DNA of 64,000 bases from Thalia democratica (Eukaryota): positions 41,850,001-41,914,000 of the forward strand of contig OZ241831.1 in NCBI GenBank assembly GCA_965202585.1, in the 5' to 3' direction. Under the pieces are notes generated by a model. It was given only the letters and a program-made list of their open reading frames with translations. It was not told where the DNA came from and ran no database searches. The position numbers were made by a program, and so were the translations under genes. Below, in pieces: positions 16,201 to 64,000 of the stretch; the stretch's first letter is position 1; each line of letters begins with the position of its first letter.

Positions 16201-19200
16201 CCTTTTTACTTCAACGTTAAAAGTCAAAACTGAAATTTGTGAACAATTTTTTTTTTAGAAAAACATCAGAAACTACAAGGAGAATCTTGACAAGAGCAAA
16301 GAAAGGAGGAGTAGCCCGCTCTTCCAACAACTGCTCTACAATTTCCTCGACAAAAACGCACCGACATTAAGTTTGAAATAATATGTTTCAGTTATTACTC
16401 GTCGATGGCTATTAACAGGGTTGCCACTTTACCTGGAAAAGCCTGGAAATACCTGGAATTTGACAATTTAGGCTAAAATAACCTGAAAAAACGTGGAATT
16501 TGAGAAATTAAAAAAAAAACCTGGTAAAACCTGGAATTTCGATCAAAAAACCTGGAATTTTTAATAATTTTAACATTTTAGTAGTAAAATTTTGATTTGA
16601 TACAAAAAATCTATCATATAATTAAGATTTTTTGTCATCATCAAATTATTTTTTATTAAAAAACACATTTAAAGTAACTTTACAGTATCTTTTCAATATT
16701 TTTATACTATTTAAAACAGTTTCTTAAAAAGAAATTAACTTAAAACTAAAAATAGACCCAAAAATGTATACTTTTGAAAACCTGGAAGAAATTTGGAAAA
16801 CCTGGAAACAATTTTGAAAAAACGAGTGGCAACCCTGTATTAAGCTTATGTGGTGTTTTTTTTTCTTTTCTGAACATCCAAATAAAGCATGCTCAATCAC
16901 TTATTTAAATTTAAAACAAAATATACACAAAAGCTGAAATTTGAAAAAAGTTACGTTTTACATTCGCAGGCGATCCGAGCGACAAGGAGGAGGTGCAGGC
17001 TTTCAACAACCTGGTCTACCTGTACGGCGAGCTGATCAAGCACAACGTGTTCTCCTACGAACACTACATAAACACCCTGGTCACCAAGGGCGAACTGACC
17101 CCGGGTAATGATAAAACCAGCGTGTTCACTTTATGTTTTTTTCATTTCGGCTTGTTTGCAGGATGTTGTTGTCTCAGATTTTTATTTGTTTGCAGACAAG
17201 ATAAAACACAAGGAAAGCTTGCCCACATATGAAATTTTGAGGTGTTCCAACAAAATGTCTTCGAATAACCGCACCTCTCATCAGTACGGAACGTCCGGAT
17301 CCAGTCTTCTCCGACAAGTAAAATTGACTTACAAACCATACAAATTAAACTTGAAAAATGTTTTTTAATCTGTAAGCTTTAGTTTTAGATAGTTTTTACT
17401 TCAATAGTAAAATGTATAATGATTCTTCATGAATATAAAATAGAATTTATCAAAGTTTTAATTAAGTTGTTTTTGATGTTTACAAACTCGTTTAACGTCT
17501 GACATTAAGTTGCGTCTTTCTCGTTTTCTAACGTGTTCTCTCATTTTATCAGAGCAAGGAATCGATCCAGAAGAGTGGTCAACTGGATTCAGACATCGAC
17601 GGGGCAGGGTTGGGAATGGACACTCCAGCTCTTGATATTGACGTGTTTGCCAACGAAACTTGCGGCAGTGCCAGGTATCAGTTTATACTACATTATCAAT
17701 GAAAACATTGATTAGTTTATGTTGACATTTAGTTAAAGCGTTTATCAGTTAGTAAATAAAAATATTCGAAAAACATTGTCGCTATTTATCAGACTCTTGA
17801 TGTTTTCGGATAACAAACGAACTGCTTTATGTTTTGAATAATATTTTCAAAATATTTTATAAAACAACACAAAGTAAATACTTTGTGTTCAATTTTCAAG
17901 ACACTTCACCGACGCGCTGCCTTCAGTGAGCTCCGAATTGAAGCAGGAACCTTCGTCCGTCAACAAGAAGCCTTCGTTAGGCAGCAGTGGCGGGAAAAAA
18001 GGGCGGGAAAGCGAGTTGTGGGGGTATGGAGAAACGCGCCACGCACAATACATCATGCACTTTCCCGTCGACACCGACGTTAGTAGTTTGTTGGTTGGAA
18101 CACAAAAAAAAATTAGTAGATGAGTTGATAGTTTATTGTTTTTAAAATTAAGTTTTATTGTCGGGCGACTTTGAAACTGTTCTGTGCTTGTGTTTGATAT
18201 TTTGACGAATTCAGTTTTTTTATTGTTCTACGCTTAAATTTTTCTGAGTACTAATTTTACTAAGACTTCTTCAGTTTCTATGTGTTGTTAAAATAACACA
18301 GTTCTACAAAGTTTTAACCAAGTTGTTAGGTGCATACTTAGACTTATAAAAATTAAGTAGTTTGAAAATTGTTGTTTTAATATACTAACAAAATTGTTTC
18401 GGATCTACTATTACAAAAATTATATTATTTAGCTAGTTATAAATTCAACGTGTGTTAAAAAATTATAAATGTTAACCTAAATTCATAGATTTTTTATAGC
18501 AGTCTAATGCTTTTATCAAAAAAAAATTGTTTACATTATTATAAATCTTTATTAAATTGCAACAAAGTGAAACCAATACTTTCTACCGAAATAGAGACAT
18601 TTTTTAGCTTATTTCTAGCAAAGTTTACTTACCAAATAATTTAACATATGCCTACATACAGGTTCATTTAATTCATTTTATATTTTAAAACGGATCACTT
18701 TTTTAACACAAGTTCATATACCAGTTGGATGACGACGAGTTCTGGAACGAAAGGCTGATGATTTTGTACGGGCCCGGAAAAAGAAGGAGTGAAGTTATGC
18801 AGAATGTCAAGAGGACTTGCAAGTTCTTCACGAAATTGTTGAAAGGAAAGAGGACTTTCGATAAAAGTTCGACCAGTAAAGGTAATCTACTTTTACATAA
18901 TATAATCACGTAGTTGTTTTGTTGATTAAATTGAACAAGTCGAAAGTATACATTGTTTTCTTCATCATTGCTAAATCTTGGTAGCCTTTTATATATTGGA
19001 AATTAATTTATCCTGTTGTGAAAACCTCCAATTGGTAAAATAGTAAAAAAGGTGATAAAATTTTTTGATCCATTTTCTGTTCTCAAAATAAGAAATAAAA
19101 TGACGTTTTACAAGAAATTATATGTTTGGTTATAATTTAAGTCGAATAAAGTTGCAAATCAACAGAAGGTATGGATTGGGAAGGCAAGTGGCAACCCAGC

Positions 19201-40620: not shown

Positions 40621-43600
40621 TCATTTCTTTTTAGTTTTCTTTTTCATTTCTTGCTGTTTTCTGTTTTAAAATCAAATGTTAAAAGCAATTAGCTACAACT
40701 TTTAAAATGTAAAGTCTAAAAACCTACTTTTTTGTATTGTGAATAAAACTTTAAAGTTTGGTAATTAAAACGTTTTCGACAAAACTAGTTTAAAGTGTTC
40801 GTGAGTTCAAATGTAAATTGAAGTTTTTTAGCAAAGTATTAGTTTTAAGACTTATTAATAGCCATTTTTATTGCAATTTATATGAATTTTAAGCGAGTAA
40901 AATGTAAATTTATTAGCGTAATAGCAGAGTAAAAGCAATAAAAAAAAAATCTTACGACAAAATTTATAAAATTACCCACTGTATACTATTTTTGACTAAA
41001 AGTCTCTTATTTGTAAATAGAACTTTATAACTTTGACATTACTTAATAGTTTTTGAGTCATATATCAAAACTTTATGCTTATTTACCAATTTTATCTCGG
41101 TTGTAATCTAATTAAGAGTATTATTGTAATTATAAAACGATTTATTTATACAATTAAAAATTGTTGAGAGTCGAATTTTACTTTTTCTAAAAATCTTACT
41201 TCTTTCTTTCATCTTCGGTTTGAGGTCTTACACCATCGGTTTCCTTAAAAGTGTTGAAGTTTTAAAATTAAAAAGTGATATAAAGCATGTAAAGTTTCAG
41301 CTGCTTTACGAAAAAGGTTTTGTTTTTGGAGCAGTGTTTATTAAGTCACTAAAAATTGTGCACCAACCTCGCAAATAGCGTCTATTTCTGCTTGGTCGAG
41401 CTTTGTTACGTCGATCAGTACAGAATCGTCGAGTGTAACTGTTTAGAGCATATTTGAGTGAGCATTAAAAGTTTTGTTTGCATAAAATTAACGTATTTAC
41501 TGTTATTTGTAAGTTTGGTTTTATTTTCGTTCTTATGAACTTGGTACACAAGAATAACGGCAGCAATTTTTTGTTTCAACAATCGAACATCTTCAGACTC
41601 GTCGTCAATTTGGTCGGGTAGTTCGAAATTGTTTTCCACGTAATGCTGAAGTAAGTGTTCAGCAAACTAAAACAAAACACTTGTTAATATAAAAGTTTGT
41701 TTAAGAACAAAAAAAAGCAAAAATGCTCAAAATAAGTTTCCGTCTAAGGACTTCGGTTTGTGAAAAGAACTCTCGGTCATCTTAATAAACAGAAAAGAAG
41801 AAAATCATTAAATAAAGTAGTTGTGGAACTAACATTTTAGAGAACAAAGTTATTTGTTAAACAGATCAAAAAACTCGACTACGACTCGATGAGTATGTTT
41901 AATTACTACAAATCCTAACAACTCACTTAGCAGATTTATTTCTAAAATAGCTGTTTCAAAATTAAAACTAAGTCATTTATGCTTTTATATAGGTTACAGT
42001 TCATAAGACAAACTTATAATGATAGCAACAAAATTCCTTTGTAATACCTTCATGCACAGAACGCCCTCCAAAGACGCTTTCGTTTGCTCGTTTATCTTAT
42101 CAATCGCATCCCATTTAATTTCACTATATCTTTTGTTTATACTTTGGCATTGTGAGTTTACCGCATCTCTTCTGTTATTGTGGTGCATGTACGGAGACCA
42201 ACACTTTACTTCGTCAGAACCAGGTGTGTCAATCTAGTTTCAAGTTTAGAATTAAGTAAACTTCTAAAGTTGTGTTAAAAATAAAGTATAGGTGATATTA
42301 AAAACTAAGAAAACTGAAACACTGTATTAGTATGTTAACTCTAAAAAAAAGAATTATAACAGCATTTTTAACAGCCTAAGTTTAAAAAAAAACTTAGAAA
42401 AAAAAAGTAATTTTTGTAGTTTTATTAATAAAACGAACATTACTTGTTTTAATCTTATACTATTGGAAATTGGAGAAAGTTTATACTTAAGCACTTGAGT
42501 AAAAGCAATTGAGTACATTTGTTAAGCTATGTTTAAGATACTTAAATTTCAGTCTAAGTATTTCTTTATATATTTAATTTTAAAATCAAAATAAAAATGC
42601 TTGTGGTTTTATAACATTTAACTTTTCTTGAAGTTGTTTACTTACTATTTAGAATTAAATTTTAAAACTTGACAAGTAAAATATTTATAACTTATTGACA
42701 AATGTAAAATAAAAACTTGTAAGAAAATATATTATAGAAAGTATTAAACTAGATTCAAATTCTCAAACTAATTGAAAAAGTTATATAGTATGCCTAGTAG
42801 ACTGAAACTACTTATAAGATCAAACTTCAATAAAGTTTTTGAATAAATAAACCTCAACAGTTCTTATTAAGAGTTTAGAATTTTAATTGAATATATATAT
42901 ATATACTAAACTATCTAGCAGTTTTTTTTTAGAAATTTGTATAAATAGATATTAAAAAACAATATATAAAGTTTTAATCAGTTGACCGTTTTAAATGCTT
43001 TAACGTATGTTTAATTTACATGCGCAAAAAATAAGGCTGCGCGACAATTCTAATTCGGACATATTAACTCTGACAATTCAAATTCTTAAAAAACTTTTAA
43101 AGGGTCACAAGTTAAAACATGTTATTATTTGAAAAAAATGCGTATTTATGTCTAACTAACACCTAGAAACTTTTTTTCTTGAATATTTTTGAATATTTTT
43201 AAAGATACACAAAAAATGTTTTAAACACAACTATTTAAAGATTAGAAATAATATTATGCTAAATGAGATCGTAGCGAAGCAAGTTCACTAGAATAAATGA
43301 TAAAATAATTTCACAGCACTCTTATTTTATTAAATTAATATATGTTTCTATGTGTTAACAAGTTACAATTTAGGACACATAAACATATGTAAGTTTAATA
43401 AAGAAAGAGTACTGTGAAAAATTGTTATTATTTTTATAACTATCTTATTCTTTTTAGTAATTTTAAAAACTCTATTTTATTTTGTTTTCAACAAAAATAA
43501 TTGTTTGTAGTTATTATTTAAACATTTATACACATACTGATTTTTTTAAAAACATACCCTTTTTCTAATATTTTTTCTTTATTTGAAATTTCTGAATTAA

Positions 43601-46600
43601 AATTGTCATGTAACCAAAAATTAGTTGTCAAAAATTAATAATCTCTACAAATTGCTAACCATCAAGACATATTCTGAATTCTTAGAGCTTTTAGTGTTGC
43701 TTTCGCTTTTCAGATCTATCAACTTGAAAGATATGTTTATGTTGTCATGATTTTCGCTGTTAAGTATACACTTCATCAGGTGTATGTAGAATTCTATCAA
43801 TTTTTTCGACGGATTGTTGTTCAAGGTTGCGAAATCTTTCTTCATCAGGTATAAGCTCTCATTTTTGTATTTTACTCCCGCTACTAAACATCTATCACCT
43901 AAGATTTCTTTGGCAGCCTTTACTTTTTCCTTGACCTATATTTTTTTGATAATTTATCTTAACTAGTATGAGATTTTTATCTAAAAATTTAAAACTAAAA
44001 ATGATAAGATGCTATCTGTTTTCAATTAAATGTTTGTAAATTGATCAATCACTATGTATATATTTTTTATAATATACAGTTTCAATTAGATAAATACGAT
44101 TAGGGATATTAGCTATGGATAGTATTTTGAGACTTATTTTTTTTGTTTACAAGTACTTATTTTTAACACAATTTAATAACTTATTTTCGTTTTCTCACTT
44201 ACTTAGATAAAATATTAATTAAACTTAAAATGAAAAAAAAGCTGTATTGAGCTTTTCTCGGTTTTTAAAAATATATTAAAGTAAAAAACATGCAATTATA
44301 ACTTTTTGAAACTCACTGTTTTAAACTTTTTTTCTTCATTTATGGTCTTTATATATCTACCTGCAAATTAAAACGATAAAATATAGGATAATAGTTTGCA
44401 ATAATAGTTTTTTTGACTTTTTGTTTAAACTTAAAAAAAATTAAAACTAAAACGTTCTGAAATTCAAATTTTAATTTCTTGTTATGCTGGAAGAGTCTGA
44501 TAACCTTTGAAAATATACTTAATTGAATTACAAAAAAGCGCTCAAAACATATAGGTTTAGGACATAGTACACGAAGAAATTTTAGGTTATCGAGCCATAC
44601 ACCACGGATACGTTTTAACGTCTTGTCCAGGACAAATTGTTAAAAAAAAGATTAATACTTACTTAATTTCATCATTTCAAGCTCATTGGCCACACTCGTA
44701 TCTTTCTTAGTGATTGCGTTTCTATCAGGATTGTTCATAAAACTTTCGTCTAAATAGTAAGAGTAAAATAGTAAGAAACTGTAAACACAGTTTATTATCT
44801 GATGCTACGTTACAAAATATTAAAATAGTAATTTCTAAGTTGAACTTATAGGTCAGTGTAGTAATAAAAATAAAATTTATTGATAAGAAATTTTTGTGTT
44901 TCAAAATTCTTAATAAAATAAATTTTAAAGCGTATAATTAAAATTAAACTTTAAATTTACTTTTTTTAGTAAAGCTCTGTCTTAAAGCACCCATTATTTT
45001 TGTTAAATCAGTTTTTTATGAATTATTTGTACAAGATTTTATCAAAAAAAAAAGAATCGAGTTTAGTAACTTTTTCTACGTATAATCTAACCTTTTGCTT
45101 TATACAAAATATTTAAATCATAAGTGTAAATAACTGTATCATTAAATTTGCAAGAAGAAACTTTTGTTCAGCGTCATTTTGCACGAGGTGTCAGTTTTGA
45201 AACTTGTGCATGAAAGGTAACTTTTGCACGACGGGTAATTATTTTACAATAAGTCAATTTTTCACAAGAGTAAATAAATAAAAATATAAGTAAAGAATGA
45301 TATAACGAAAGTTAACGATAGTAAGGGTTAGGGGTAACAGTGAAAAAAAAGTAAGAAAAAAATATATAAAACAAATAAAACACTGATAATATTTACCGAC
45401 CAAGGGTATGGTAAGATTGATAATTAATAAAAAGATAAAGTTAGAATAGTAATAAGAAAAAATTAAAAAGTTACTGACCAAGGTTAAGGTTCAGAGGTAA
45501 CAGTGATGGTAAAAATACAAAAAAGTAAAAAAATAATTTTAAAAACAGTAAAATAAGCAAGTAAGAATAACCTGTGCGAAATTGACGCTGTACAAAAGTT
45601 TCTTCTTGCATACTTGATAATACATTTTTTTACAGTAATGATTTTAAATAGTAGGTATAAAGCAAAAGTTCTTTAGGTAAGTTTAATTTTTCCGGTACAC
45701 ATGTATAAAAATCTAAATATAAAAAAAATGATTCAAGAAATGAAAAACTTTTTACTTTTATTTGTTACAAGCATAAAAAATAAATAAGCATAAACAGTGT
45801 ACAGTGTATATTTATTATTAAACTTTCTAAAGTAAAGTTAAAAAATTTTTTTTTTTTGCATATGCTCGTAGATATCTTAATAGATTGATACTCGTATTTA
45901 TATAAAGTAATCTTCCTCTTAAGAACGCATTTTGAACAGCCAACAGGTAGTATGTAGCTAAAAACTATCATTCTAAATGAAAAACTGCATTTCGAGCACA
46001 AACATTTAGTCTTAATAGCGCGAGCTCAATAGAAATAATACTTTAAAATTATTTCAATAACAAATTTTCATCGCAAAAATTATCAAGTTTTAAGATACAG
46101 TGTTTTTAGTTCTCGTATAAATTTAACCTGGATAGCTACCATTAAACAGTTTATCTTCACTTATATTCTCTGTTTTGGATGTGTGCAAAAAGGTGGTCTA
46201 AGATAAATTTTATTTCTAATACATTGATAAACACAGCACAATGAAACTGTGACTTTTGTAAAACAAGTTATTTTTGTAGCTACTTTTTTTATCGACAAAT
46301 AAATTTTCAACAAGACAAATACTTAAAGCATCAAATAACTTAATACTCTAGTTAAACCGACTTTTTTCAGTGACTGCGGGTAGTTTCATATCGTCTGCCT
46401 GTTTTTTTTTAATGTTGAACTAATTAATTTACAGGATTAAATGTATTAACACAACAGCAAAGCTTTAAAAAAACAATTTAGAGTTATCAAAATATCTTCA
46501 AAGCATTTTTAAATTTTATAATTTATATTTATTTTATCCACTTTAAAATAAACTAATATAACTCTGCTCCATTTAAAACAGTTTAAAGAGCTTCAGATAA

Positions 46601-49600
46601 AAAGTTTTTTTTTTATAATTTATATTTTAAAGTTTATTTAAACTAATATTTAAAGTTCAAGCTAACTAAAACTTCATCTGCTTTACTGTCGTCGAAATCT
46701 TTTGGTTTAACTAAGAAAGGAAACGTTTTCTTCAGTTGATTAGGACCTTTTGTAATAAAAATAAAGTTATTGTTTAATACCTATATTTCATGGTTTCATT
46801 AAAAAATACCAACTACTTTTTAACCTAAAATTTAGTGTTTTACAAAATTTTTATTTTTACTCATATCATGATTATTGCAAGTCTCGTTTTCATTCAAGAT
46901 ATATATACATAAATGTTGTTATACTTATTATATATAAAACACCATTCTTAATTCGGTGAAAACTGTTTAAACGCATAAAGACATGAGTTAAAAAAAAAAA
47001 AGATAAATTTTTGAAAAGAAAACTTTACTGTGTAACTTATTATTAAGGTCAACAAAAAAGTAAACTTATGTATAAAGATAGATAAAACCTTTATTTTTAA
47101 TTCAATAATATCCTTAATTACACAAGTTAGTAAACCACATGTATTTAAACTTAGAGTGTTATCCTAAAAATTATTAAATAGATAGTTCGGTGACATTAAA
47201 GGTAAATATCATAGTTCTTTATTACTGTACCAATTTTTTTTTATGTAGCTCGAAGTCAAAGTTATACTAGCATAAACGTTTTGCATCCTATAAATAAATA
47301 TGAAAGTAAGTTATATTTTGAGAACTTCATAGATCAGACAGGCTAAAATTTTTAGTTATAAACTTTAAATAAATTAGTTTAAAATTTAAATTCTAAAAAT
47401 TGATTTTGATAGAATAAAAACTAAATTAAAGTGTTTTTTTATATCATTAAGATGAGTTATATGGTAAATATTTATTTTAAACTTTAATTAAGAAATAAAA
47501 ACAAAACAAAATTTTTTAAATCTTTAAAAAGTATTTTATTTATTAAGAAGACACAATACAATGTTGATGGTTATGTTTTGATTGTTTCTTTTTTTGCTAA
47601 TGTTGGTTATAGTTTAACTTACATGTACTATATTTAGCTCACTTTACTTTGATAATAAGTTTTTATAACCTATTTTGCAGAAATTAATACATTTTCAATT
47701 TCTTTAAGCTCATGAATTTAAATCAAAAGTATAATTAAAGCAAAAGAAAAACTCTTAGCTAAAGTAGAAAAGGGTTTAAAGCATTTACAAAATCACTTTT
47801 TTCTCGGACAAGTAGATTGTAGGAGTTAAGTCTTTTAAATTTTTAAAGGTATTGAATTTTGTTAATTATAAACCGGCAACAAATAATTTCGAAATTCAAC
47901 CTAAAAATTGGGAAGCTTTGATTCTACAAGCAATATGAGAATGTGTTGCTTTTGGTCCATTCAGGTACACGTGTTCAAAAATATATTTCATAGAATATTC
48001 ATAATCACCAACAGGCATCAAAAGTTCTTTTAAATAATTTTCATACAACTGACCCAAAAACTGCAATGCGTTATTGTTTTATTAAGTATTCGTTTGTACT
48101 AAGCTATTATACAATGTACATCTATTTACTAGAAAGAGAATAATTAGGAGAAAAACTAGAGAACAGGGTTTCCCAAAAACAGGCAATATTTCCCCGATGT
48201 GGGTGGTTTTTGACTAACAGGCATTAATTAGAAAGGAGGTAAACATGCAAATATAAAGTTAAGTAAAAAAAGGGTCTAAATCTAACAAAGAGGGCTATAC
48301 ATTTTTTTTTACTTTGTTAAGTAAGCAATTGCAAAAATGAGTTTAGGAAACCCTGGTTTAGAATACTAGGTCTTTATTAAGTTAGCAGTAATAGTTACTG
48401 ACAATCAGAAAGTTTCTATAACCTCAGTTACTGAGGGTAAACTAAAACAAATATAGTTTCAACTGGTTTAAACACCTGAATGTACGTGAATCTTGCTGGT
48501 TCGAACTGTTTCTTGCTGAAAACGAACTCATCAAAAAAAATACGACTAGAGTGACTGACCTGAAAAAATAATAAGTGACATTGAGAAAGAAAAAAAAAAA
48601 CAGGTACCAGCAAAACCTTCATTTAAATTAGTCATTGTTATATAACTATATAAAAAGCAAACTTACTTTTATACGAAATTCGTGCAACGTTTCATCGTCT
48701 TCACCAAGCAAACTAATTTCAAAGTCTTTGTGTTCTGGGTAGCACTTCTTAAGAAATTGATGATAATAACCAACCAAAGCTAGAGTTGGATTTGTATACA
48801 AAGAATCAAAATCCTCAGTGCTTAAAATAACTCGAGTTTTATTATCCACGAACAATTGCAACTCCAGCTCGTCTGGGTGGCTAGCTTGAAACTGATAGAA
48901 AACAATGTGTTTTTTAAGCTCGCGTAAACTGTTTTCAACAAAGTAATGATATTTTTAACTTACAATTACGTTTTTCTTATGGTCAGCTAGCCATGTGAAA
49001 AATTCATCTGTAATAAAAGTGATTTGGTTGTGTTAAAGGAACTAAAACAAAAACCCATGTTTAAAACGGTTTAGTTCGACAAACATGTTCATATCTACCA
49101 CAGTTAGGCTAGTTTCTTTATGCTAAATACATATCAACAGGTTGTGTAACAAAAAGGTAAAGTAATAGTAAAGTGTTTTCACATTATGCAACTAAAATAC
49201 ATTTTAACCTGGTGTGTTGCCACTAAATACTTCAGTTTCAGGTCTTTTAGTTTCTTTAGCACGTTGTTCTGTTGTGAAAGACTTGTCAATAGGAATGAAA
49301 GTTAGGCAAATATTTTGATAACTGATAATTTAAAAACAAAAAATTTCATACAACTGCTTTTCTAGTTGTGTAGCTAATATAAAAAGCGCTTTTTTTAATT
49401 GTAAAATAAAATAGGTAAAACCTAAAACATGCATTTTTTGGACGGTAGAGGAAATAGTTTGGCTAAGATAAATTTGAACTTCTATATGTTGTTCTTTGTA
49501 GCTAAATAAGTCAAAATTTATATATATATATATTTATTTTTAGTAACAAAACTGACTTTGCTTCTTCATCCTTGACTCTCTTTTTTCTTTAATTTTATCT

Positions 49601-52600: not shown

Positions 52601-55600
52601 TGTTTAAAGTTATACAAAATAGGAGTCGAATTAAACAACATATATTGTATTGTATACTATTTTATGTTAGTTTATAATGCTTATAGATTATCTTTAGTGA
52701 AGATCTATTTTCATCTACGTTATCTTCTATTCTTTTATTGCAGTAAGTATTATTTTTTTATTTACGACTCTATGGAGCTAAGTTAACTTGTTTATCACAG
52801 AAAAAACATACGTCAGTTTAATTAAGAAAAAGTACTGTGCAAATTGTTTTTTTTACATATTCCAGCGAGATTGTTTTGATAGGGCCTTTATTAACAAACG
52901 ATTAGCTTGCAGTTTTGAATACTATAGTAAAAATATGTTTTTTCTTAATAAAAAAAAAAATATTAAGTCATTTTGTTTTTTTTAAATCGTAACAATAGAA
53001 TTTTTTTTGTATGATGGAAGAAAAATTTCTAAAAACTTAAGGTCAATAACTTAAAAAAAAATATGGTTGAATTTTAATTTTCTAGTATATTAACCATAAA
53101 AAATTTGGTCGATACGTTCATATCTGCAACTTTTTACAAGAACGACTATACATCTAAATTATGTCACATTTCTAAAAACTGACTTATAGTTGAAACTCTA
53201 TGGTTTAACATAAGAACCAATGTTAGTTTTTGTAAAACAAACCCTCATACCCTTATGCCTTTAAAAATAACTAGTAGTCAATTGATGTTTTCGTTGTTTC
53301 TAGTACAGAAACAAATTATTACGATTACTATTACGATTACTTTTTACGAATGTAAAACTTTAACATCGATCGTTTGCGACAAGATTTACAAAAGAGTACG
53401 TAAATTACTTAATACAAAAAAAAAAGCTACTAACCATCAAAACTTTTATTACAGATGTTTTGTATCATTGTTTCCATCAGACATCTCTTGCTTGATTTTG
53501 TATCTAAATGAAAACAGTAAATAGAAACAAAATATTTGGTTTTTTTCGTTTGGATATATCATAAGTGTTTACAGCCTAATAATAAATACAGGTATTAAAG
53601 ATGTTGATAAATAGGATACAAATACAACTTTTAAATACTTAAATTTTGAAATAATTTTTAGTCTATTAAAGACGAGAGTAGTTCTAGGAAGTATTTAAAT
53701 CTTTAATATGCTTACCAACTGGTAGGTTATTTTTGAATAGAGAATTATCTAAATACAATTTTACGACAAATTCTTCAAAGCAGGGTTTCCAAAGTTATGG
53801 GCCATGACAGATACTCAGCGGGCCATGAGCAGCAAAGGGGCCAAAGGGGAGCCATGTAGTTAAGGAGGCACAGGGGATCATAAGGTCATAATTTGAAACT
53901 TAGATATTCTAAAATTGTTGTTGTAAAGAAAAAAAAAGGTTTTGGGTGCTTTTAATGGTAGTTTTTTAAGTAAGTTTGTTGAAGGATGCAATAGCTTTTT
54001 TAATTTCTTTAAAGGGAGCCATTTGGAAAAAAGTTTGGGAAACCCTGCTTTAAAATTTAATATGAATTTAAACGCTTATTCTAGATATGTTGAAACTAAA
54101 TGGAACTCATCAAATTACTTAATTGCCATGCAAACTAGAATGCTTTTTTAACTTAAATGTGTTTTTAATAAATATACTATTTTATTTAGGTATCTATTAA
54201 AATACTAGAAAAAAAACTTTAGGAGAGTAAATACAAATAATTAACTTAATTATATTAATTTGTCACTATAAATAAAGAATCTTAACATTATTTTACACCT
54301 ACATAGTAGTTAAACAAATACTCCTAAAAATTATAATTTTAGCTCTTTACAGTAAGCGGCGATATATATTTCGAAATGTTTTAAGTTTTAAATATATCAG
54401 TGTTATTATGTAGTTAATGTTTTACATTTTTTTGGTAAATTATAGTTTTTAGTGTACTTATTATCTACACATATGTATTTAAATCAATAAGAGCAGTTGA
54501 TTATAATTAGTTGATTATATTTTGTTTTAAAATTTCTAATAAAACATAAACTATACTAATTAGGAATATTAGTAGATAATTTTTTTGAAGGCCAAAAAAG
54601 ACTAAATGTAAAGCTTAAAAACTGATTAAAAAAATTCTAAAAACCATAACTAATTGTAATAGCATTACTAAAAAATAAATGTTAAAACGTAAATAACTTT
54701 TACCACTTCCGTCTTTTTCATAATACTGGTCTTCAATTTCTATATTATAATCTTCAATATCACTATTATTATCTTTACTATAATTATTCTTATCTTCAAT
54801 ATCACTATTATTATCTTCAATGTCATTATTTTTAACTTCGATATCATTTTTCTTATCTTCAATATCATTATTCTTATCTTCAATATCCATTTTGTTATGT
54901 TCAGTATCACTATTATTATCTTCAAAATCATTATTCTTATCTTCAATATCCATTTCGTTATGTTCAGTATCACTATCATTATCTTTAATATCAGCATTCT
55001 TATCTTCAATATTTATAATGTTATCTTCAATATCATTATTAGTGTTTTCAATATCACTATTTTTACTTTTAACTTCATTATTTTTGGCTTTAATAGTATC
55101 ATTATGAACACCAGTATCCTTAATATGACCTTCTGTATTTTGATTTTTGTCTTCTGTTTCTTGATTCTGATCTTCATTCTTTTGGTATTGGTATTTAGTA
55201 GCTTGATTCTGTTCTTTACGGCCTTGTTCGATGAGATTTCTTAGCTCATCTTTTACTTGTTTACAAGTATCTTCCGGCAGTCGAAATTCATCATCAAGTT
55301 TTAGTTCACCTTTAAGCGCCTTCTCCGTCAGTTTAAGTGCAAGTTCTTTCAGTAGATCTGAAAATTAAATCAAGAAAGTCAGTTTTTATTTTGCATACTT
55401 TTTTAAGGCAGCAACAATAAAATATTATCTTTAATAAAACTATTGTAGAAACCTGAGATTACTTTTTTTAATTACCTATAGAATTTTTATTCTATATATG
55501 AAAACAATTATATTTCAAACAAAAAAAAACAAAGTTTTTATTTTATACTCATGTTGTTTGGATTAAAAAATAACTTTGTAGATTATTTTCTAAACATAAT

Positions 55601-58600
55601 TGTTTATATATGTAGTAACAAGGATAAGACAAAATGATCACAATAAATAGTTGACATACCTTAGAACGATTTAAAAATTTAAATATTATTTTATTCTTAC
55701 TATATAATTTTTATAAGAATGAATAATATCGCATTTTACATATACAGTTAAAAACTTTTTTAACCTTTTTTGTTATCATTGTTACTTGATATCAAAAAAG
55801 TTATAAACGAAATAAAGAAGTTTAATAAAAATATTAAATATGTAAACATTTTATTTAAGGTTTTGATAACTATGATAAGTAATTTTGTTTTCACAATTAA
55901 ACATTTTATTTTCTTAAAGCTACTTTTGAATTTACAAAACAAAAACTAAACAAAAAATAAAACACTAAAAATACTTTTTTTTTTTCTAAAAAGATAATTT
56001 AATCAACTACTTATATCTACAAAGGTAATAATTAACCTTTGTTTTCATTACTATTTTTCATTTTTACAACTATTTGATCGAGGAATTTGTGAAACTTTTC
56101 AATAACTTTTTCGCAAAAACTTTCATCAGAAATATTTTCGTTGTTGTCCAAATTAAAATTATTGTTTTGAGTTTTGCTATAAAATTCCTGAGCAATCGTT
56201 TTGGAATTGTCTAGTTAATAAATCGAATAAATATGTTAGTTTTTTAAAGTAGATTCAAACCCCCTCCTATAAAATTTTTTTGTCTAAGGTAAAAAAAAAA
56301 TAAACTACTAAGTAAAAGTAAAACTTATAACTTTATACCTAAAAGTAAAGCGATAGAAAAATGATTAATTTGTTGATTAATTACTTAACAAGCATAGTTT
56401 TACAATTTAATGAACATATTAAATAAAGTTTGAAAACAAGAATAAAGTAGATTATTTAGAGAAAAGTAATTATTGATTGTAACATTAATTTTAGCGTAGG
56501 AAAGTATAATTTACAGTTAAAAAAAAAATGTTTTGCTTACCTCTTTTAAATGATTGATCCTTTAATTCTGAAAAACAAAATAAAGCACTAATTTTTTAAA
56601 ATCCTACTTTAAATAAAAAAAGCTTTGCTTACTTTACTATAATACAAGCGTAAATATAGTTTTAAATAACTTATATATTAGATAGAGCAATATATACTTT
56701 AGAAATTTATACTAAGCTTTTGTTTTAAACTCGTTATCATTTCTTAAAGTACTTTAAAAAGCGTCGTCAGCAAGCAAGTAAATAGCAACTAAAATAACAA
56801 AAAAAATTATGCAGTAGTTTATAAAATAAAGAGTACATGTTGTATCTGTAAAAAAACTTTATTATGGTTTGTTTACTTTAATAAAATCATAAATAACGGT
56901 TAACATACAAAAGGAAGATTTAATAAACTTAAATATTATAATACTATTACAGTAAATAACTCATTTTCATCTTTAAAAAATGGCTAAAGACATAAAAAAT
57001 CAAAATAGCTTCCGAAATTTATTGGTAAAAATTTTGTCATAGATTTATTTTGGCATGGAAACGTATTAAAAACTTTTAAGGTACAATTTTATCGTTTTTC
57101 AACTAAAAAAATATTGATTTGGAAAAGTAGTTCGCTTTGATACTTAATGTAGATTGTTCCGTAAAATGCTAACACAGAACACAAAAATTACATACACCTT
57201 TATGATATTTCTAATGACCATTCTTTATTTCAATAACTAACTAGTTTATAAACGTAACATAAAATAACCAACTTAGTTTATGATAAATAGTAGCTTTACC
57301 ATTGGAAAAGATTCTTTCAAAACTTTTAGTACCAAATTTAATTCTACAAATTTTAATTATAACTAAGTTTTTCAAATGTTTGTACACAGCATTACATTAG
57401 TATTTACATGGAATAAAAATTTTGTTCTCGAGAAAAGCAATTGCTATTAAAAAGCAAAACAAAATGTACTTAAGCTTAAACTGTTTTACAGATGAATACG
57501 TTTAAATTGAAGTTTATTAAGTAATAAAATTGTCACCTCTTTCTTCTTTGCTACGTCGCTCGAGTTTGCCCAACAAGCTGTAAAAATCTTCAGTTACTTT
57601 GCTGCAAAACTCTTCGGCAAGCTTTATGGTTGCCACAGACTTGAGTTCATTGTTTTGATTTTTGCTGTAATATTGCTGAACAACTGCTTTGGCATTATCT
57701 GTTTGCATGGTAGCTTGGTAAAATTTACAAATAAACGTATCATTTCAACTGTTTTAACTTAGACTTTAAGTAACATATTTTAAAACACTTAACAACCTAA
57801 GCAAGTAGATAATTTTACTATATTTAAATAAACCATTAGTTTTTTCACACAATTTCGGATGTACAACCAACTCTTCATCTTTTCTAATTGTTTTTATTGA
57901 TTTGTAGAAAACTTTATCTCCTTCTACGTAAGCCACACAATTCGCTTTTCTATGCATTTTTACTCATTGTTTTACTTTAGTAACATTTTTTGCTACACTA
58001 TGCACTGCATTACTAAACAATTTTATAATAAGTTAGCATTTGTAGTTAGTTTATTTTTGAAAAGTTCAGTCTCGAAAGTGTACTTAGTTTTTATCATCTA
58101 AAACTAAAAATAATTTTCAAACTTATTTTTTCGAACTCTGGTAAGCCAGTTGCTAGAATAACAATACCTCCCATTTACTGTTATTGAATCACCGCTTGTG
58201 TTTTTGAACTGTTTTATTATAACAAAATAAAATATATATTTCTTAATTTAATAAAGTTAGCTTAAAGTCATTTTTTCAGAGTTAGGTCATAAAACATCTA
58301 AACAACTTTAGTAACTGAAAAGCAAACATACTGAAAATAAAAATTGTATGATCCTTAAAGTTTAAAAGTTTTATTTTACATACCAAACTAATTAAAAATA
58401 TAAAATCCATACAACAAACCAACCTTCCAGTACATGTTGTCTGTTTGTCCGACTTTTCTGCTTTCGCTTCCATTGTACGGGCCAAGCTTGGTGTGCGCGC
58501 CAACTTCTTCAAACGCGACCACGCAGTGCTCGTTGTCCGAGTTGCGCATCAGCCTGAACTCTTTCGGGCAAGTGCTGAAAATTTCCATGCCGTTCTTGCT

Positions 58601-59210
58601 TGTGCCCTGAAATTATATTTTTATTTAATGGCGTTACTAAATCACGTGAGTAAATAAATTCAAATCTTAACCTGAGCAACTACGTTTTCTATTGTTCTTT
58701 TTTCTTGCACCCAGTTCTGGCCAGCTATCATAATTTATAAAAAGTTAACGAGTATAGTTATGGTTTGCAATTTTTATATGAAATTATATATTATAGTTTG
58801 GTTAGTGAATTATTTATTCAAAACAATATTCGATTAAGAAAAAAATATGTTGCAAAAAAAAGTTTTTATTTTAAGCTTTTCGAGTTTTAGTTCATTAGAT
58901 GCTTATTTTAGCTATTTAAAAAGATTTTTAATTAACTTGGTAAGTTTCCATACTAATTAAGTTAATGTTATTTAAAAAAACTTAAAGAAACATTTTTTAA
59001 ACAACTCACAATGATTTTCGATTTTCAATTCTGAGTTCAGATTTAATTTATTCGAAGTATTGTAGTCAACAACTACCGACTCATAACAGTCTCCGTAGCT
59101 CCTGAGATTACTGTTATTTACTTTCAGTCGTTTTTCTATGTCGCATAATGAGTTCTTTAATTTATTTTCAAATTTATCCGCTGCTATTCCGCACAAATTA
59201 CATGTGTTAT
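40621..59210 (-). CDS. Multi-exon gene: PRDM-type PR/SET domain, acidic heptad repeat, two Ulp1/SENP-like (C48 fold) pseudo-protease domains, basic C-terminal tail; 5' end unresolved
   Basis: Phase-consistent GT-AG chain (minus strand): 59210-59010, 58724-58672, 58606-58424, 58208-58123, 57949-57834, 57713-57537, 56567-56541, 55357-54704, 53503-53435, 51528-51388, 51281-51195, 50590-50525, 49598-49557, 49373-49355 (tentative), 49281-49209, 48891-48667, 48559-48476, 48060-47901, 47831-47797, 46882-46861 (tentative), 46746-46673, 46398-46362, 45957-45892, 44749-44663, 44360-44317, 43935-43660, 42233-42048, 41645-41501, 41438-41368, 41243-41200, 40660-40621 (KQQEMKKKTKKK-TGA). Total 3590 nt, at least 1195 aa. 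The first exon starts in phase 1, so more exons lie upstream (candidate 61311-61270). The domain exons are well supported; the short low-complexity exons are less certain, and I assume all exons belong to one gene. Confidence 0.65.
41501..43935 (-). CDS. Second Ulp1/SENP-like (peptidase C48) domain, catalytic Cys and His replaced
   Basis: Exons 43935-43660, 42233-42048, 41645-41501. Against recalled SENP1: SLYLMKKDFATLNN..LIEFYIHLM / LTITRKDIQTLNH..IINFYMNML; EYVLMID / HWCLAVVD; INEQTKASLEGVLCMKH / IPQQMNGSDCGMFACKY (ungapped); DVRLLKQKIAAVIL / HMPYFRKRMVWEIL. Confidence 0.7.
45135..45624. mobile_element. MITE with TIRs of about 55 bp
   Basis: TGTATCATTAAATTTGCAAGAAGAAACTTTTGTTCAGCGTCATTTTGCAC matches the reverse complement of GTGCGAAATTGACGCTGTACAAAAGTTTCTTCTTGCATACTTGATAATACA; internal direct repeats (GGTAACAGTGA, GACCAAGG). 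Superfamily unresolved. Confidence 0.7.
47797..49281 (-). CDS. First (more degenerate) Ulp1/SENP-like domain
   Basis: RVILSTEDFDSLYTNPTLALVGYYHQFL is clearly homologous to LYLMKKDFATLNNNPSKKLIEFYIHLM of the second domain. It is followed by HEFRIKVSHSSRIFFD and ends SHIACRIKASQFL, in the order expected for a C48 fold. The C-terminal half aligns weakly. Confidence 0.5.
48164..48355. mobile_element. hAT-like MITE, short
   Basis: TIRs CAGGGTTTCCCA / TAGGAAACCCTG; TSD poorly conserved. Confidence 0.6.
49965..50290. mobile_element. MITE with imperfect TIRs of about 90 bp (possibly Tc1/pogo-derived)
   Basis: GCCTCTTTATTAGTAAATTACCATTTATATTTTTTGCTGCCTTATAAACAACGCCCCC matches the reverse complement of GGGAGCGTTATTTAGTTAGGCGGCGAAAAATACAAACGGTGATTTATTATTTAAGAGAC. 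Confidence 0.7.
51907..52140. mobile_element. MITE family B-related partial copy
   Basis: Starts TAAGGGCATAGGAG and contains TATCGTCTCCTAC; the second terminus was not found. Confidence 0.4.
53781..54047. mobile_element. hAT (Charlie-like) MITE
   Basis: TIRs CAGGGTTTCCAAAGTT / AAGTTTGGGAAACCCTG, degenerate 8-bp flanks CTTCAAAG / CTTTAAAA, internal GGGCCA/GGGAGCCA motifs. Confidence 0.75.
54720..55070 (-). repeat. Coding 21-nt minisatellite (consensus GATATTGAAGATAAGAATAAT, DIEDKNN) within the 654-nt exon 55357-54704
   Basis: Roughly 16-17 degenerate 7-aa units (DIEDKNN, DIEDNNS, DTEHNKM). This explains the five overlapping ORF-track entries here; only the D/E/N-rich minus frame joins the flanking splice sites in phase. 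Confidence 0.9.
57834..58606 (-). CDS. PR/SET (PRDM-family) domain, three exons
   Basis: CPKEFRLMRNSDNEHCVVAFEEVGAHTKLGPYNG...MYWK|F...VNGRYCYSSNWLTRVRKNK|KANCVAYVEGDKVFYKSIKTIRKDEELVVHP aligns with the recalled PRDM pattern LP.GL..GVW....FGPY.G...WLI...VDG...ANWMRYVNCAR..QNLVAFQ...IFYR...I.PG.ELLVWY. Confidence 0.9.
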
Positions 59211-61860: not shown

Positions 61861-62753
61861 ATAAAATAAACATAAACGATGGACAACCTTAAGAAAATAC
61901 AATAATGCAAAAAATTATAAATGAATTCAAATTAAAATTAAAACTAAAAATGTATAGTGCTATTACTAGAGAATTACTTAACAAAATTAAAAGTTTTATA
62001 ATAATGAAAAAGACTTTTTTAAACTTTTATATATGCTTTATACTTACAATAGATGATTTGTTTTATATAGGTTTGGATTTAGCTTAAAAACACAAAACAA
62101 AATGGCGCTTAACAAATGAGGGTACAAGTAATAACAAAAGTAGAACTAAGTGATAAAAGAATTAATACGCTAAGTTTTAAAATAAAATTTCCTAAAGTGC
62201 GGGCAGGTGTAGAAGAGCTCTTGTCTTTTGTTTAGAATTCGTTTCTTATTAGCAAGTGCTATTTCTATTTTTTCCAAATTGCAAGTCTTACAGATTTTAC
62301 CTATATTCTTCATTTCCCTGATCTTGTGCATTATGCTCCATTTTAAATCGTAGCTGGTGTTATTGTTTTTTAAACTCCAAATGTACTTGGAAAGCTCTGT
62401 TCCCTTGTTATTTTCATTCTTAATATCGCTAATGTGCGCATACCATCTCTTTTTGAATTGGTTTCCTGTTGATCCTATGTATTCTTTTGTTTCGATCTGA
62501 CTGGTTATCGTCGCCTTATAAACAACATTCTCCTGCAAACATTTGCCACTTAAGGGGCAGGAGCCTTTGTCGCGGCAGTTGCACGTTTTTTCCTCTTGGT
62601 TGTTCTTATGATTCAGTTTGTTTAGTATCTTCCTATTGTGGGTATTTATTAGTGATTTGACATTATCCATACAACAGTATGATATTTTGCAATTACTTCT
62701 GTTGAAGATCTTTTTCATGCTCTCTGTTGTGAAATGTTTGTCAATTAGGTCTA
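61811..62753 (-). mobile_element. Penelope-like element (Naiad-type), 5'-truncated inverted copy: GIY-YIG endonuclease, 3' region and hammerhead
   Basis: ORF 62170-62718 contains CNC....CPL.GKCL, VVYKA, EYIGST...FKKRW..H, TELSKYIWSLK, CKTCNLEK, LNKRQEL...CPH, the Cys-rich GIY-YIG pattern of Naiad PLEs. The element may extend to about 61730. Confidence 0.9.
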
Positions 62754-62754
62754 G

Positions 62755-64000
62755 TACCTCGCAAACAATTGCTATATGCCATATAGAAAAGAAAACTCCT
62801 CAATCAGATATATCAGTAGTGACTCCAACCACCCGAAGATAATCAAGAAAAACTTACCCAAAATGATTGAGAAAAGACTAAATAGATTGACCACAGACCT
62901 AAGAACCTTTGATAATGCAAAACATAGCTACCAAATTGCACTGCTCCAATCCAACTTCAAACACAAGCTTGAATATGAAAACAAAACCAACCCTGTCGAC
63001 AAGAAGAAACGTAAACGAACAAGAAAAATTATGTATTTTAATCCCCCATACTGCCAGTCAGTAAAAACCAACATTGGGGGGAGATTTTTAGACCTAATTG
63101 ACAAACATTTCACAACAGAGAGCATGAAAAAGATCTTCAACAGAAGTAATTGCAAAATATCATACTGTTGTATGGATAATGTCAAATCACTAATAAATAC
63201 CCACAATAGGAAGATACTACACAAACTGAATCATAAGAACAACCAAGAGGAAAAAACGTGCAACTGCCGCGACAAAGGCTCCTGCCCCTTAAGTGGCAAA
63301 TGTTTGTAGGAGAATGTTGTTTATAAGGCGACGATAACCAGTCAGATCGAAACAAAAGAATACATAGGATCAACAGGAAACCAATTCAAAAAGAGATGGT
63401 ATGCGCACATTAGCGATATTAAGAATGAAAATAACAAGGGAACAGAGCTTTCCAAGTACATTTGGAGTTTAAAAAACAATAACACCAGCTACGATTTAAA
63501 ATGGAGCATAATGCACAAGATCAGGGAAATGAAGAATATAGGTAAAATCTGTAAGACTTGCAATTTGGAAAAAATAGAAATAGCACTTGCTAATAAGAAA
63601 CGAATTCTAAACAAAAGACAAGAGCTCTTCTACACCTGCCCGCACTTTAGGAAATTTTATTTTAAAACTTAGCGTATTAATTCTTTTATCACTTAGTTCT
63701 ACTTTTGTTATTACTTGTACCCTCATTTGTTAAGCGCCATTTTGTTTTGTGTTTTTAAGCTAAATCCAAACCTATATAAAACAAATCATCTATTGTAAGT
63801 ATAAAGCATATTTAAAAGTTTAAAAAAGTCTTTTTAATTATTATAAAACTTTTAATTTTGTTAAGTAATTCTCTAGTAATAGCACTATACATTTTTAATT
63901 TTAATTTTAATTTGAATTCATTTATAATTTTTTGCATTATTGTATTTTCTTAAGTTTGTCCATCGTCTTATGTTTATTTTATTTTACAGGCCTGAAGATC
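62755..64000 (+). mobile_element. Penelope-like element (Naiad-type), 5'-truncated forward copy: RT C-terminus/thumb plus GIY-YIG, with a premature stop
   Basis: YMPYRKENSSIRYISSDSNHPKIIKKNLP (PLE thumb, SNHP motif), YFNPPY, then the same endonuclease. CAG>TAG at 63307-63309; natural stop at 63670-63672. Positions 63089-64000 are the reverse complement of 61843-62753. It runs off the window inside the ribozyme core (..AGGCCTGAAGATC). Confidence 0.9.

Follow-up and report, generated by a model that had tools for sequence, protein, structure and literature searches.

The locus described here raises the question of whether a domain encoded on the minus strand of a contig of Thalia democratica is a Ulp1/SENP-type protease that has lost its active site and has been retained for another function. 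The window, i.e. the whole stretch of DNA that was analysed, comprises 64,000 nucleotides (nt), corresponds to G000:C7:41850001-41914000 of the 802-Mb assembly and is AT-rich (28% G+C); C5, C6, C7, C8 and C977 denote contigs of the same genome (G000), and loci on them are given in Mb. A prediction made from the letters of the window alone (hereafter the original prediction) had placed at 41501-43935 a SENP-like pseudo-protease with the catalytic Cys changed to Glu, the His lost and the oxyanion Gln and the Asp kept, and had proposed it to be a catalytically dead reader or substrate trap for SUMO or related modifiers. The reading that we favour, with somewhat more confidence than doubt, is that of a very diverged descendant of the Ulp1/SENP fold (peptidase C48, clan CE) from which all catalytic residues have been lost and which forms the C-terminal domain of a PR/SET gene with a tail resembling a SUMO-interacting motif (SIM).

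Exon structure of the domain

The stretch encodes a globular domain at the C-terminal end of a genuine minus-strand gene with several exons, the joints of which are predicted. Three open exons (A, B and C) were found, and all of their borders read AG/.../GT, with the slash marking an exon border. Exon A (43660..43935; 92 codons, phase 0-0) is flanked by AG at 43937-43936 and GT at 43659-43658. It encodes the N-terminal half of the domain, consisting of a helix, a beta-hairpin with L.x.KDF.TL, the long helix PS[KR]KLIEFYI.LMK and two strands, and its 3′ end reads S-E-Y-V-L-M (NSEYVLM in the window), opposite HW.L of the C48 enzymes. Intron 1 (42234..43659, minus strand; 1426 nt, GT...AG) follows at a position common to all paralogues and to related contigs from the Tara Oceans marine metagenomes, where open reading frames (ORFs) read through into VS.... 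Exon B (42048..42233, minus strand; 62 codons) holds the positions aligned to the catalytic Asp, the oxyanion Gln and the nucleophile Cys of C48, and its reading at 42095-42048 is INEQTKASLEGVLCMK. It is separated by intron 2 (41667..42047, minus strand; 381 nt, GT at 42047-42046 and AG at 41668-41667), the position of which is kept in the paralogues and in Tara contig L061, from exon C (41501..41666, minus strand; 55 codons plus 1 nt). The latter encodes FAEHLLQHYVENNFELPDQ...R..KQKIAAVIL and is colinear with the C-terminal helices of C48 domains. The sequence strings quoted in the original prediction are present. Its upper limit, 43935, coincides exactly with the exon A acceptor and its lower limit, 41501, with the exon C donor; a terminal exon beyond the latter limit had been missed.

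This terminal mini-exon D (41344..41438, minus strand) encodes (I)TLDDSVLIDVTKLDQAEIDAICEVGAQFLVT, is closed by the stop codon TAA at 41343-41341 and is preceded by intron 3 (41439..41500, minus strand; 62 nt), the 3′ half of which is unusually conserved. At the end of exon C a phase-1 donor, (G or A)/GTAA[AT]T, occupies the aligned place in all paralogues. The spliced product of exons A to D comprises 241 amino acids, i.e. a domain of ~210 amino acids (A-C) and a tail of 32 amino acids (D); the four exons contain no stop codons, their splice sites are canonical and their frames are open.

Relatives of exon A were found at C5:16.20, C5:14.66, C5:17.68, C6:65.42 and C6:65.64 Mb. These exon A paralogues share 39-58% identity and have common start and end points, and each is followed by exons B and C with identical exon borders, giving six loci with the window included.

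Relationship to the Ulp1/SENP proteases

In the order and spacing of its motifs the domain matches the Ulp1/SENP proteases (MEROPS C48, PF02902, clan CE). Counterparts were found for L.i..[KR]D..TL, the (WLND)-IEF[FY] helix, the HW.L.vvD strand, the i.yyDS strand, the element Q-x5-C-G-[VM]-[FL]..K[FY]A[ED] and the C-terminal helix with R....IL. It differs from these enzymes in that the His, the Asp, the Cys and the Trp clamp are missing, Lys or Arg stands in place of the SUMO-binding Asp, the core is ~30 residues short and PF02902 is not matched; in architecture, it differs by its fusion to PR/SET and to further copies of its N-terminal module.

A structure model does point to C48. The AlphaFold2 (AF2) model of exon A alone (predicted local distance difference test (pLDDT) 65; element order H-E-E-h-H-E-E) was compared with three structure libraries. 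Foldseek against the PDB placed SENP2 at rank 1, with further chains of SENP1, SENP2 and Ulp1 in the top 50; against 48,161 representative chains SENP7, SENP1 and SENP8 were found at ranks 1, 4 and 6; and against AFDB Swiss-Prot Arabidopsis ULP2A was ranked first of 550,129 models (probability 0.66). Every C48 match of the model lay in the initial 50-60-residue part of the catalytic domain, at the colinear place. The predicted N-terminal substructure of the domain is thus matched best by SENP1, SENP2, SENP7, SENP8, Ulp1 and ULP2A. For the SENP-like fold that had been predicted, the N-terminal half is supported by this model, while the catalytic half is no more than suggested by the motif register.

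This register emerges from an hhalign alignment of six spliced paralogues with eleven C48 domains of the genome, which is colinear over 178 columns and places each C48 motif opposite a motif of the family. In addition, six to eight of ten genuine C48 nucleophile segments were placed best in the register with Glu on Cys, in which G, K, [FY], A and [ED] around the nucleophile are aligned as well. The predicted position of Glu at the nucleophile agrees with the hhalign alignment and with most C48 segments. The ungapped 22-residue match on which it had originally been based gave a shuffle P of 0.15 (0.10-0.26), so that on its own it is not above chance.

Besides this shuffle test, a number of results weigh against a C48 origin. 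No match was obtained with Pfam for exons A, B and C singly at E-values up to 10, a test in which power is lowered by the exon-by-exon procedure, and none of the 102 matches of PF02902 in the whole genome, searched in six frames, lies in the window. When eleven diverse C48 domains of this genome were combined into a profile, it scored the spliced family at only 3-5 bits, and the hhalign comparison itself reached P=0.05 and a probability of 1%. Sequence searches of the PDB with the exon profiles returned no SENP. In the C48 core, the long helix and the His strand are separated by ~30 residues that have no counterpart here, and the AF2 model of exon B alone was poor (pLDDT 54) and gave no C48 match in a fold search that was uninformative. 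An ESM Atlas feature search with exon A gave no usable match, and a complex prediction in which the exons were entered as separate chains (A, C and B) scored 0.01 and speaks neither for nor against the assignment. None of the sequence-based comparisons was significant; sequence statistics alone do not establish homology with C48.

An alternative to be considered is a lineage-specific domain of independent origin, the C48 resemblance of which would stem from short and common helix and strand patterns; 'pseudo-protease' would then be a misnomer, whereas the gene, the selection and the tail would be unchanged. We regard this as rather unlikely: in each of three separate structure libraries the top rank goes to a C48 enzyme, always at the colinear place, the supply of three of the top six among 48,161 chains by one small family is very unlikely by chance, and five motifs are colinear over the 178 aligned columns. 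Taken together, a C48 (Ulp1/SENP) origin of the domain is considered probable.

Residues at the catalytic positions

At the place of the catalytic His-Trp of C48 the window carries Glu-Tyr (codons GAA TAT, 43669..43674, minus strand). The predicted loss of the His and change of the HW motif to EY thus stand; a one-residue gap decides whether the His aligns with the Glu or with the Tyr of S-E-Y. At this place E-H, E-Y or E-F is found in the paralogues and E-Y, K-Y or E-F in the Tara relatives. The position of the catalytic Asp is occupied by a Ser (codon 42195..42197, minus strand; C-W-S-P versus y-Y-D-S) according to both hmmsearch and hhalign, and by Ser or Phe in the paralogues. The Asp that had been described as kept, that of M-I-D (42230-42228), is aligned with the non-catalytic Asp of HW.L.vvD and not with the catalytic Asp of yyDS, so this part of the original prediction was mistaken. 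At the nucleophile position a Glu is encoded (GAG, 42066..42068, minus strand) inside the block A.LEG[VI][LI]CMK/FAE. The Gln at the oxyanion position (codon 42084..42086, minus strand), six residues before this Glu, is kept, as had been stated, in the window copy; among the paralogues only the one at C5:16.2 Mb has it, and the others have Thr or Lys.

The triad is thus lost completely, with Ser at the Asp position, Glu or Tyr at the His position and Glu at the Cys position. All paralogues and relatives likewise have non-catalytic residues at the triad positions; a His-Asp-Cys triad cannot be assembled, and the claim that the domain is not a protease holds. Judged from these aligned residues, the domain would be unable to work as an isopeptidase. 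Both Trp of the Gly-Gly clamp are likewise absent, with no Trp after the His position, and WLND is aligned with (N)PS[KR], in which the position of the SUMO-contacting Asp is a conserved Lys or Arg (PS[KR]K).

The signature A.LEG[VI][LI]CMK/FAE across the junction of exons B and C is the best-conserved block of the family. In nine sequences the invariant columns of exon B are W41, A53, L55, G57, C60, M61 and K62, while E56 is kept in eight of the nine and is Gly in one Tara relative (P0009). The invariant Cys (codon 42054..42056, minus strand) lies four residues after the Glu in the same helix, in register with the buried helix positions that follow the C48 nucleophile (..CGVF.C..AE). No His is available for pairing with it. 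The His that had been placed after CMK is in fact Phe in the spliced reading (CMK/FAEH) or Val in the unspliced one.

An enzyme with an altered active site was also considered, in the manner of the clan-CE proteins of the YopJ type, which became acetyltransferases; hydrolysis or transfer might then involve, for instance, the [VI][LI]CMK Cys, which is invariant, or else the conserved Glu. The former nucleophile helix, the best-conserved block of the family, contains the invariant Cys, and one paralogue carries a His at the aromatic position (S-E-H). Neither a His nor an Asp is conserved throughout the family, however, the Glu is replaced by Gly in P0009 and, by register, the Cys lies one helix turn beyond the nucleophile position, and we hold such an enzyme to be very unlikely.

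Paralogues, relatives and selection

Among the copies, pairwise ratios of non-synonymous to synonymous substitution rates (dN/dS) over the domain were 0.24-0.48, where dS was not saturated. The six paralogous loci with the same exon structure, these ratios and the copies in related species support the view of a maintained, intron-interrupted coding domain, and the domain is kept by selection as a non-catalytic module. A pseudogene, or the decaying remnant of an Ulp1 gene carried by a transposon, was considered because the genome contains at least 100 PF02902 matches, many of them in multi-copy, intron-less ORFs of the transposon type. Either origin is highly improbable, however: the four exons are free of stops, the introns share place and phase both among the six loci and in other species, dN/dS stays under 0.5, copies of the family are few and its exons are embedded in a colinear PR/SET gene. 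Transposon-borne Ulp1 copies (plant KI-MULEs; Mutator- or Ginger-type Ulp1-PHD) share with the window family the presumed fold and are abundant in the same genome, but they keep the H, D, Q and C, an intron-less domain, many copies and Pfam E-values down to 1e-39, none of which applies to the window family. Many of the PF02902 matches of this genome are multi-copy, intron-less ORFs of 320-380 amino acids clustered at G000:C8:18.2-28.4 Mb, probably a transposon-borne expansion.

Outside the genome, the exon A profile found among 1.84 billion representatives only four single-exon ORF fragments, all from Tara Oceans marine metagenomes; one further match, to an Ig-repeat protein, was judged spurious. 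Word-index searches yielded further Tara ORF fragments and no spliced product. The Tara contigs share intron positions with the window gene. Of the words sampled from the stretch, 18% and 6% were present in two marine metatranscriptome runs, compared with an exon share of 27%, which is no more than suggestive of transcription. A 23-nt word across the B/C junction had one match in metagenome contigs, antisense inside an ORF for a THAP-type transposase, and was dismissed as a coincidence; the ORF in question, on contig L068 (Ga0049113_10001341) at 90-2993, encodes 967 amino acids.

Two further copies deserve mention. On the unplaced 32.7-kb contig C977 (G000:C977:4732-14088) a PR exon and an upstream module copy are present with 91-92% protein identity; the contig ends before the studied domain, and the copy represents either a haplotig or a very recent duplication. 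The closest paralogue, G000:C5:16203899-16214462 (L021, L048), has four upstream module copies, three of which lie in units of ~3.5 kb that are ~88% identical including their introns and are therefore young internal tandem duplications.

The terminal exon and the SIM-like tail

An alignment of the 3′ ends of the three closest copies showed the donor A/GTAAAT, located in the window at 41501/41500, followed by the 62-nt intron and then by a conserved block, mini-exon D. After the phase-1 splice it reads (I)TLDDSVLIDVTKLDQAEIDAICEV..., up to the stop at 41343-41341, and only through this splice is a frame obtained that is open and conserved in all three close copies. For the same reason an ORF running on from exon C to ...STILY and a stop (41415) was rejected. 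Mini-exon D is 83-87% identical at the nucleotide level in the two closest paralogues, compared with ~60% for the coding exons, and elsewhere in the genome the block occurs only at these paralogues. An Rfam search with this conserved 3′ block matched no family. The same degree of DNA conservation among the paralogues (83-87% versus ~60% in the rest of the gene) extends over the last 30 nt of intron 3 (41439-41470) together with mini-exon D (41344-41438), which suggests a possible constraint on the splicing of the micro-intron besides that on the peptide.

The mini-exon encodes the SIM-like motif D-D-S-V-L-I-D-V-T (41404..41430, minus strand), which consists of a hydrophobic core with an acidic/Ser flank. 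SIMs have been defined by a four-residue hydrophobic core with at least three of V, I or L and an acidic or Ser/Thr flank (PMC12751080), and DDSVLIDVT agrees with this sequence definition. An analogous terminal exon with DENY.[VL]L[VA]D[VI]SE[DE]N is found in the other subfamily and also in the Tara contigs L061 and L063 of a related species; the motif is kept throughout the six paralogues and in these two Tara contigs. It resembles the SIMs of the PIAS type (V-I-D-L-T with an acidic/Ser flank) in that the window reads L-I-D-V-T after D-D-S and the other subfamily L-V-D-V-S-E-D, each combining four core hydrophobic residues with flanks that are acidic or phosphorylatable. It differs from them in that the putative motif is located at the extreme C-terminus on a mini-exon of its own, and the motif definition is a loose one.

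Probable upstream exons of the gene

From 59232 down to the domain, each exon on the minus strand of the window has its counterpart, in colinear order, in the paralogous C5 loci. Two separate exons (58612-58391 and 57963-57769; 57769..58612, minus strand) gave matches to PF21549 PRDM2_PR of 24.6 bits (E=2.3e-5) and 12.1 bits (E=0.16), each under the 27-bit cut-off, which cover the profile positions 80-113 and 9-50 and are colinear. PR-like exons also lie ~20 kb upstream of two paralogous domains. The colinearity with the paralogues indicates that the PR/SET exons probably belong to the same gene, which would span from ~59.2 kb to 41.3 kb of the window on the minus strand. An upstream exon-A-like module copy (48649..48954, minus strand; ..ILSTEDFDSLYTNPTLALVGYYHQFLKK..) was recognised by the exon A hidden Markov model at E=2e-5 and appears to be part of the same gene; in the paralogues, one to four such modules precede the last domain. 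A long exon at 54618-55364 (minus strand) of the same gene contains an acidic repeat of the DIEDKNND type, and its exon start is kept in the paralogues. The nearest conserved upstream exon ends in phase 1 and exon A starts in phase 0, and therefore at least one small exon is missing from the gene model.

The N-terminal exons of the window gene resemble PRDM/PR-SET proteins by their matches to PF21549 PRDM2_PR. In contrast to these proteins, no zinc-finger array was seen in the window gene, and its C-terminal part carries Ulp-like modules and the SIM-like tail. A literature search found no description of an architecture of PR/SET, Ulp-like modules and a SIM-like tail.

Neighbouring features in the window

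The plus strand at 11800-36800 carries a gene for MED12 (Mediator subunit 12), the exons of which are strikingly GC-rich within AT-rich introns; Med12-LCEWAV was matched at 16993-17229 of the window (E=6.8e-10). Two near-identical Cys-rich ORFs in inverted orientation (MKKIFNRSNCKISYCCMDNVKSL...CNCRDKGSCPLSGKCL) are located at 62170-62718 (minus strand) and 62776-63309 (plus strand). Pfam assigned no family to either of the two, and the pair looks like part of a mobile element.

Possible link to SUMO and biological meaning

The idea of a substrate trap has its model in the engineered protein Ulp1(3)(C580S), a dead Ulp domain that binds SUMO with a dissociation constant of 12.8 nM and loses this binding with D451N (PMC3216068). 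Even the C580S trap needs the salt bridge between Ulp1 Asp451 and Smt3 Arg64 in order to bind SUMO (PMC3216068). Like this trap, the window domain is of the Ulp type and has no nucleophile; unlike it, the window domain does not keep every SUMO-contact residue, being basic at the position in question, and the other triad residues are gone as well. Because the equivalent of Asp451 is Lys or Arg and the Trp clamp is gone, docking of SUMO or of the tail of a ubiquitin-like (UBL) protein in the canonical protease mode is unlikely, and from its residues a canonical SUMO trap appears doubtful. The C-terminal SIM-like peptide (ψLψDψ[ST] with acidic flanks) would be the more likely link to SUMO, over binding in the canonical protease mode.

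We propose that the domain may act as a non-catalytic interaction module. The nucleophile helix is its most constrained element, and the former active-site region, A.LEG[VI][LI]CMKFAE, is therefore probably still a functional binding surface. The SIM-like tail might dock the PR/SET protein on SUMOylated chromatin partners or, alternatively, might fold back on the domain. A more far-reaching version, which we put forward only tentatively and regard as unlikely, would have a family restricted to pelagic tunicates that combines PR/SET, a domain of the histone-methyltransferase type, with one or several dead Ulp1-derived modules and a C-terminal SIM, in which the old cleft with the Glu helix binds a UBL or UBL-like partner. 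If true, it would represent a natural pseudo-SENP acting as a SUMO-dependent chromatin reader or writer.

Catalytically dead relatives of deubiquitinases are established regulators. For the SENP/Ulp1 family, no natural dead member has to our knowledge been characterised, and a literature search found none. If the assignment of the fold should fail, a conserved and hitherto unannotated domain family in marine animals would still remain. If it holds, the domain would be a pseudo-SENP under selection that is wired to PR/SET and a SIM and whose best-conserved element is the former nucleophile helix. It would then be a natural experiment on the re-use of a UBL protease fold for recognition, and a lead into SUMO-linked chromatin control in tunicates.

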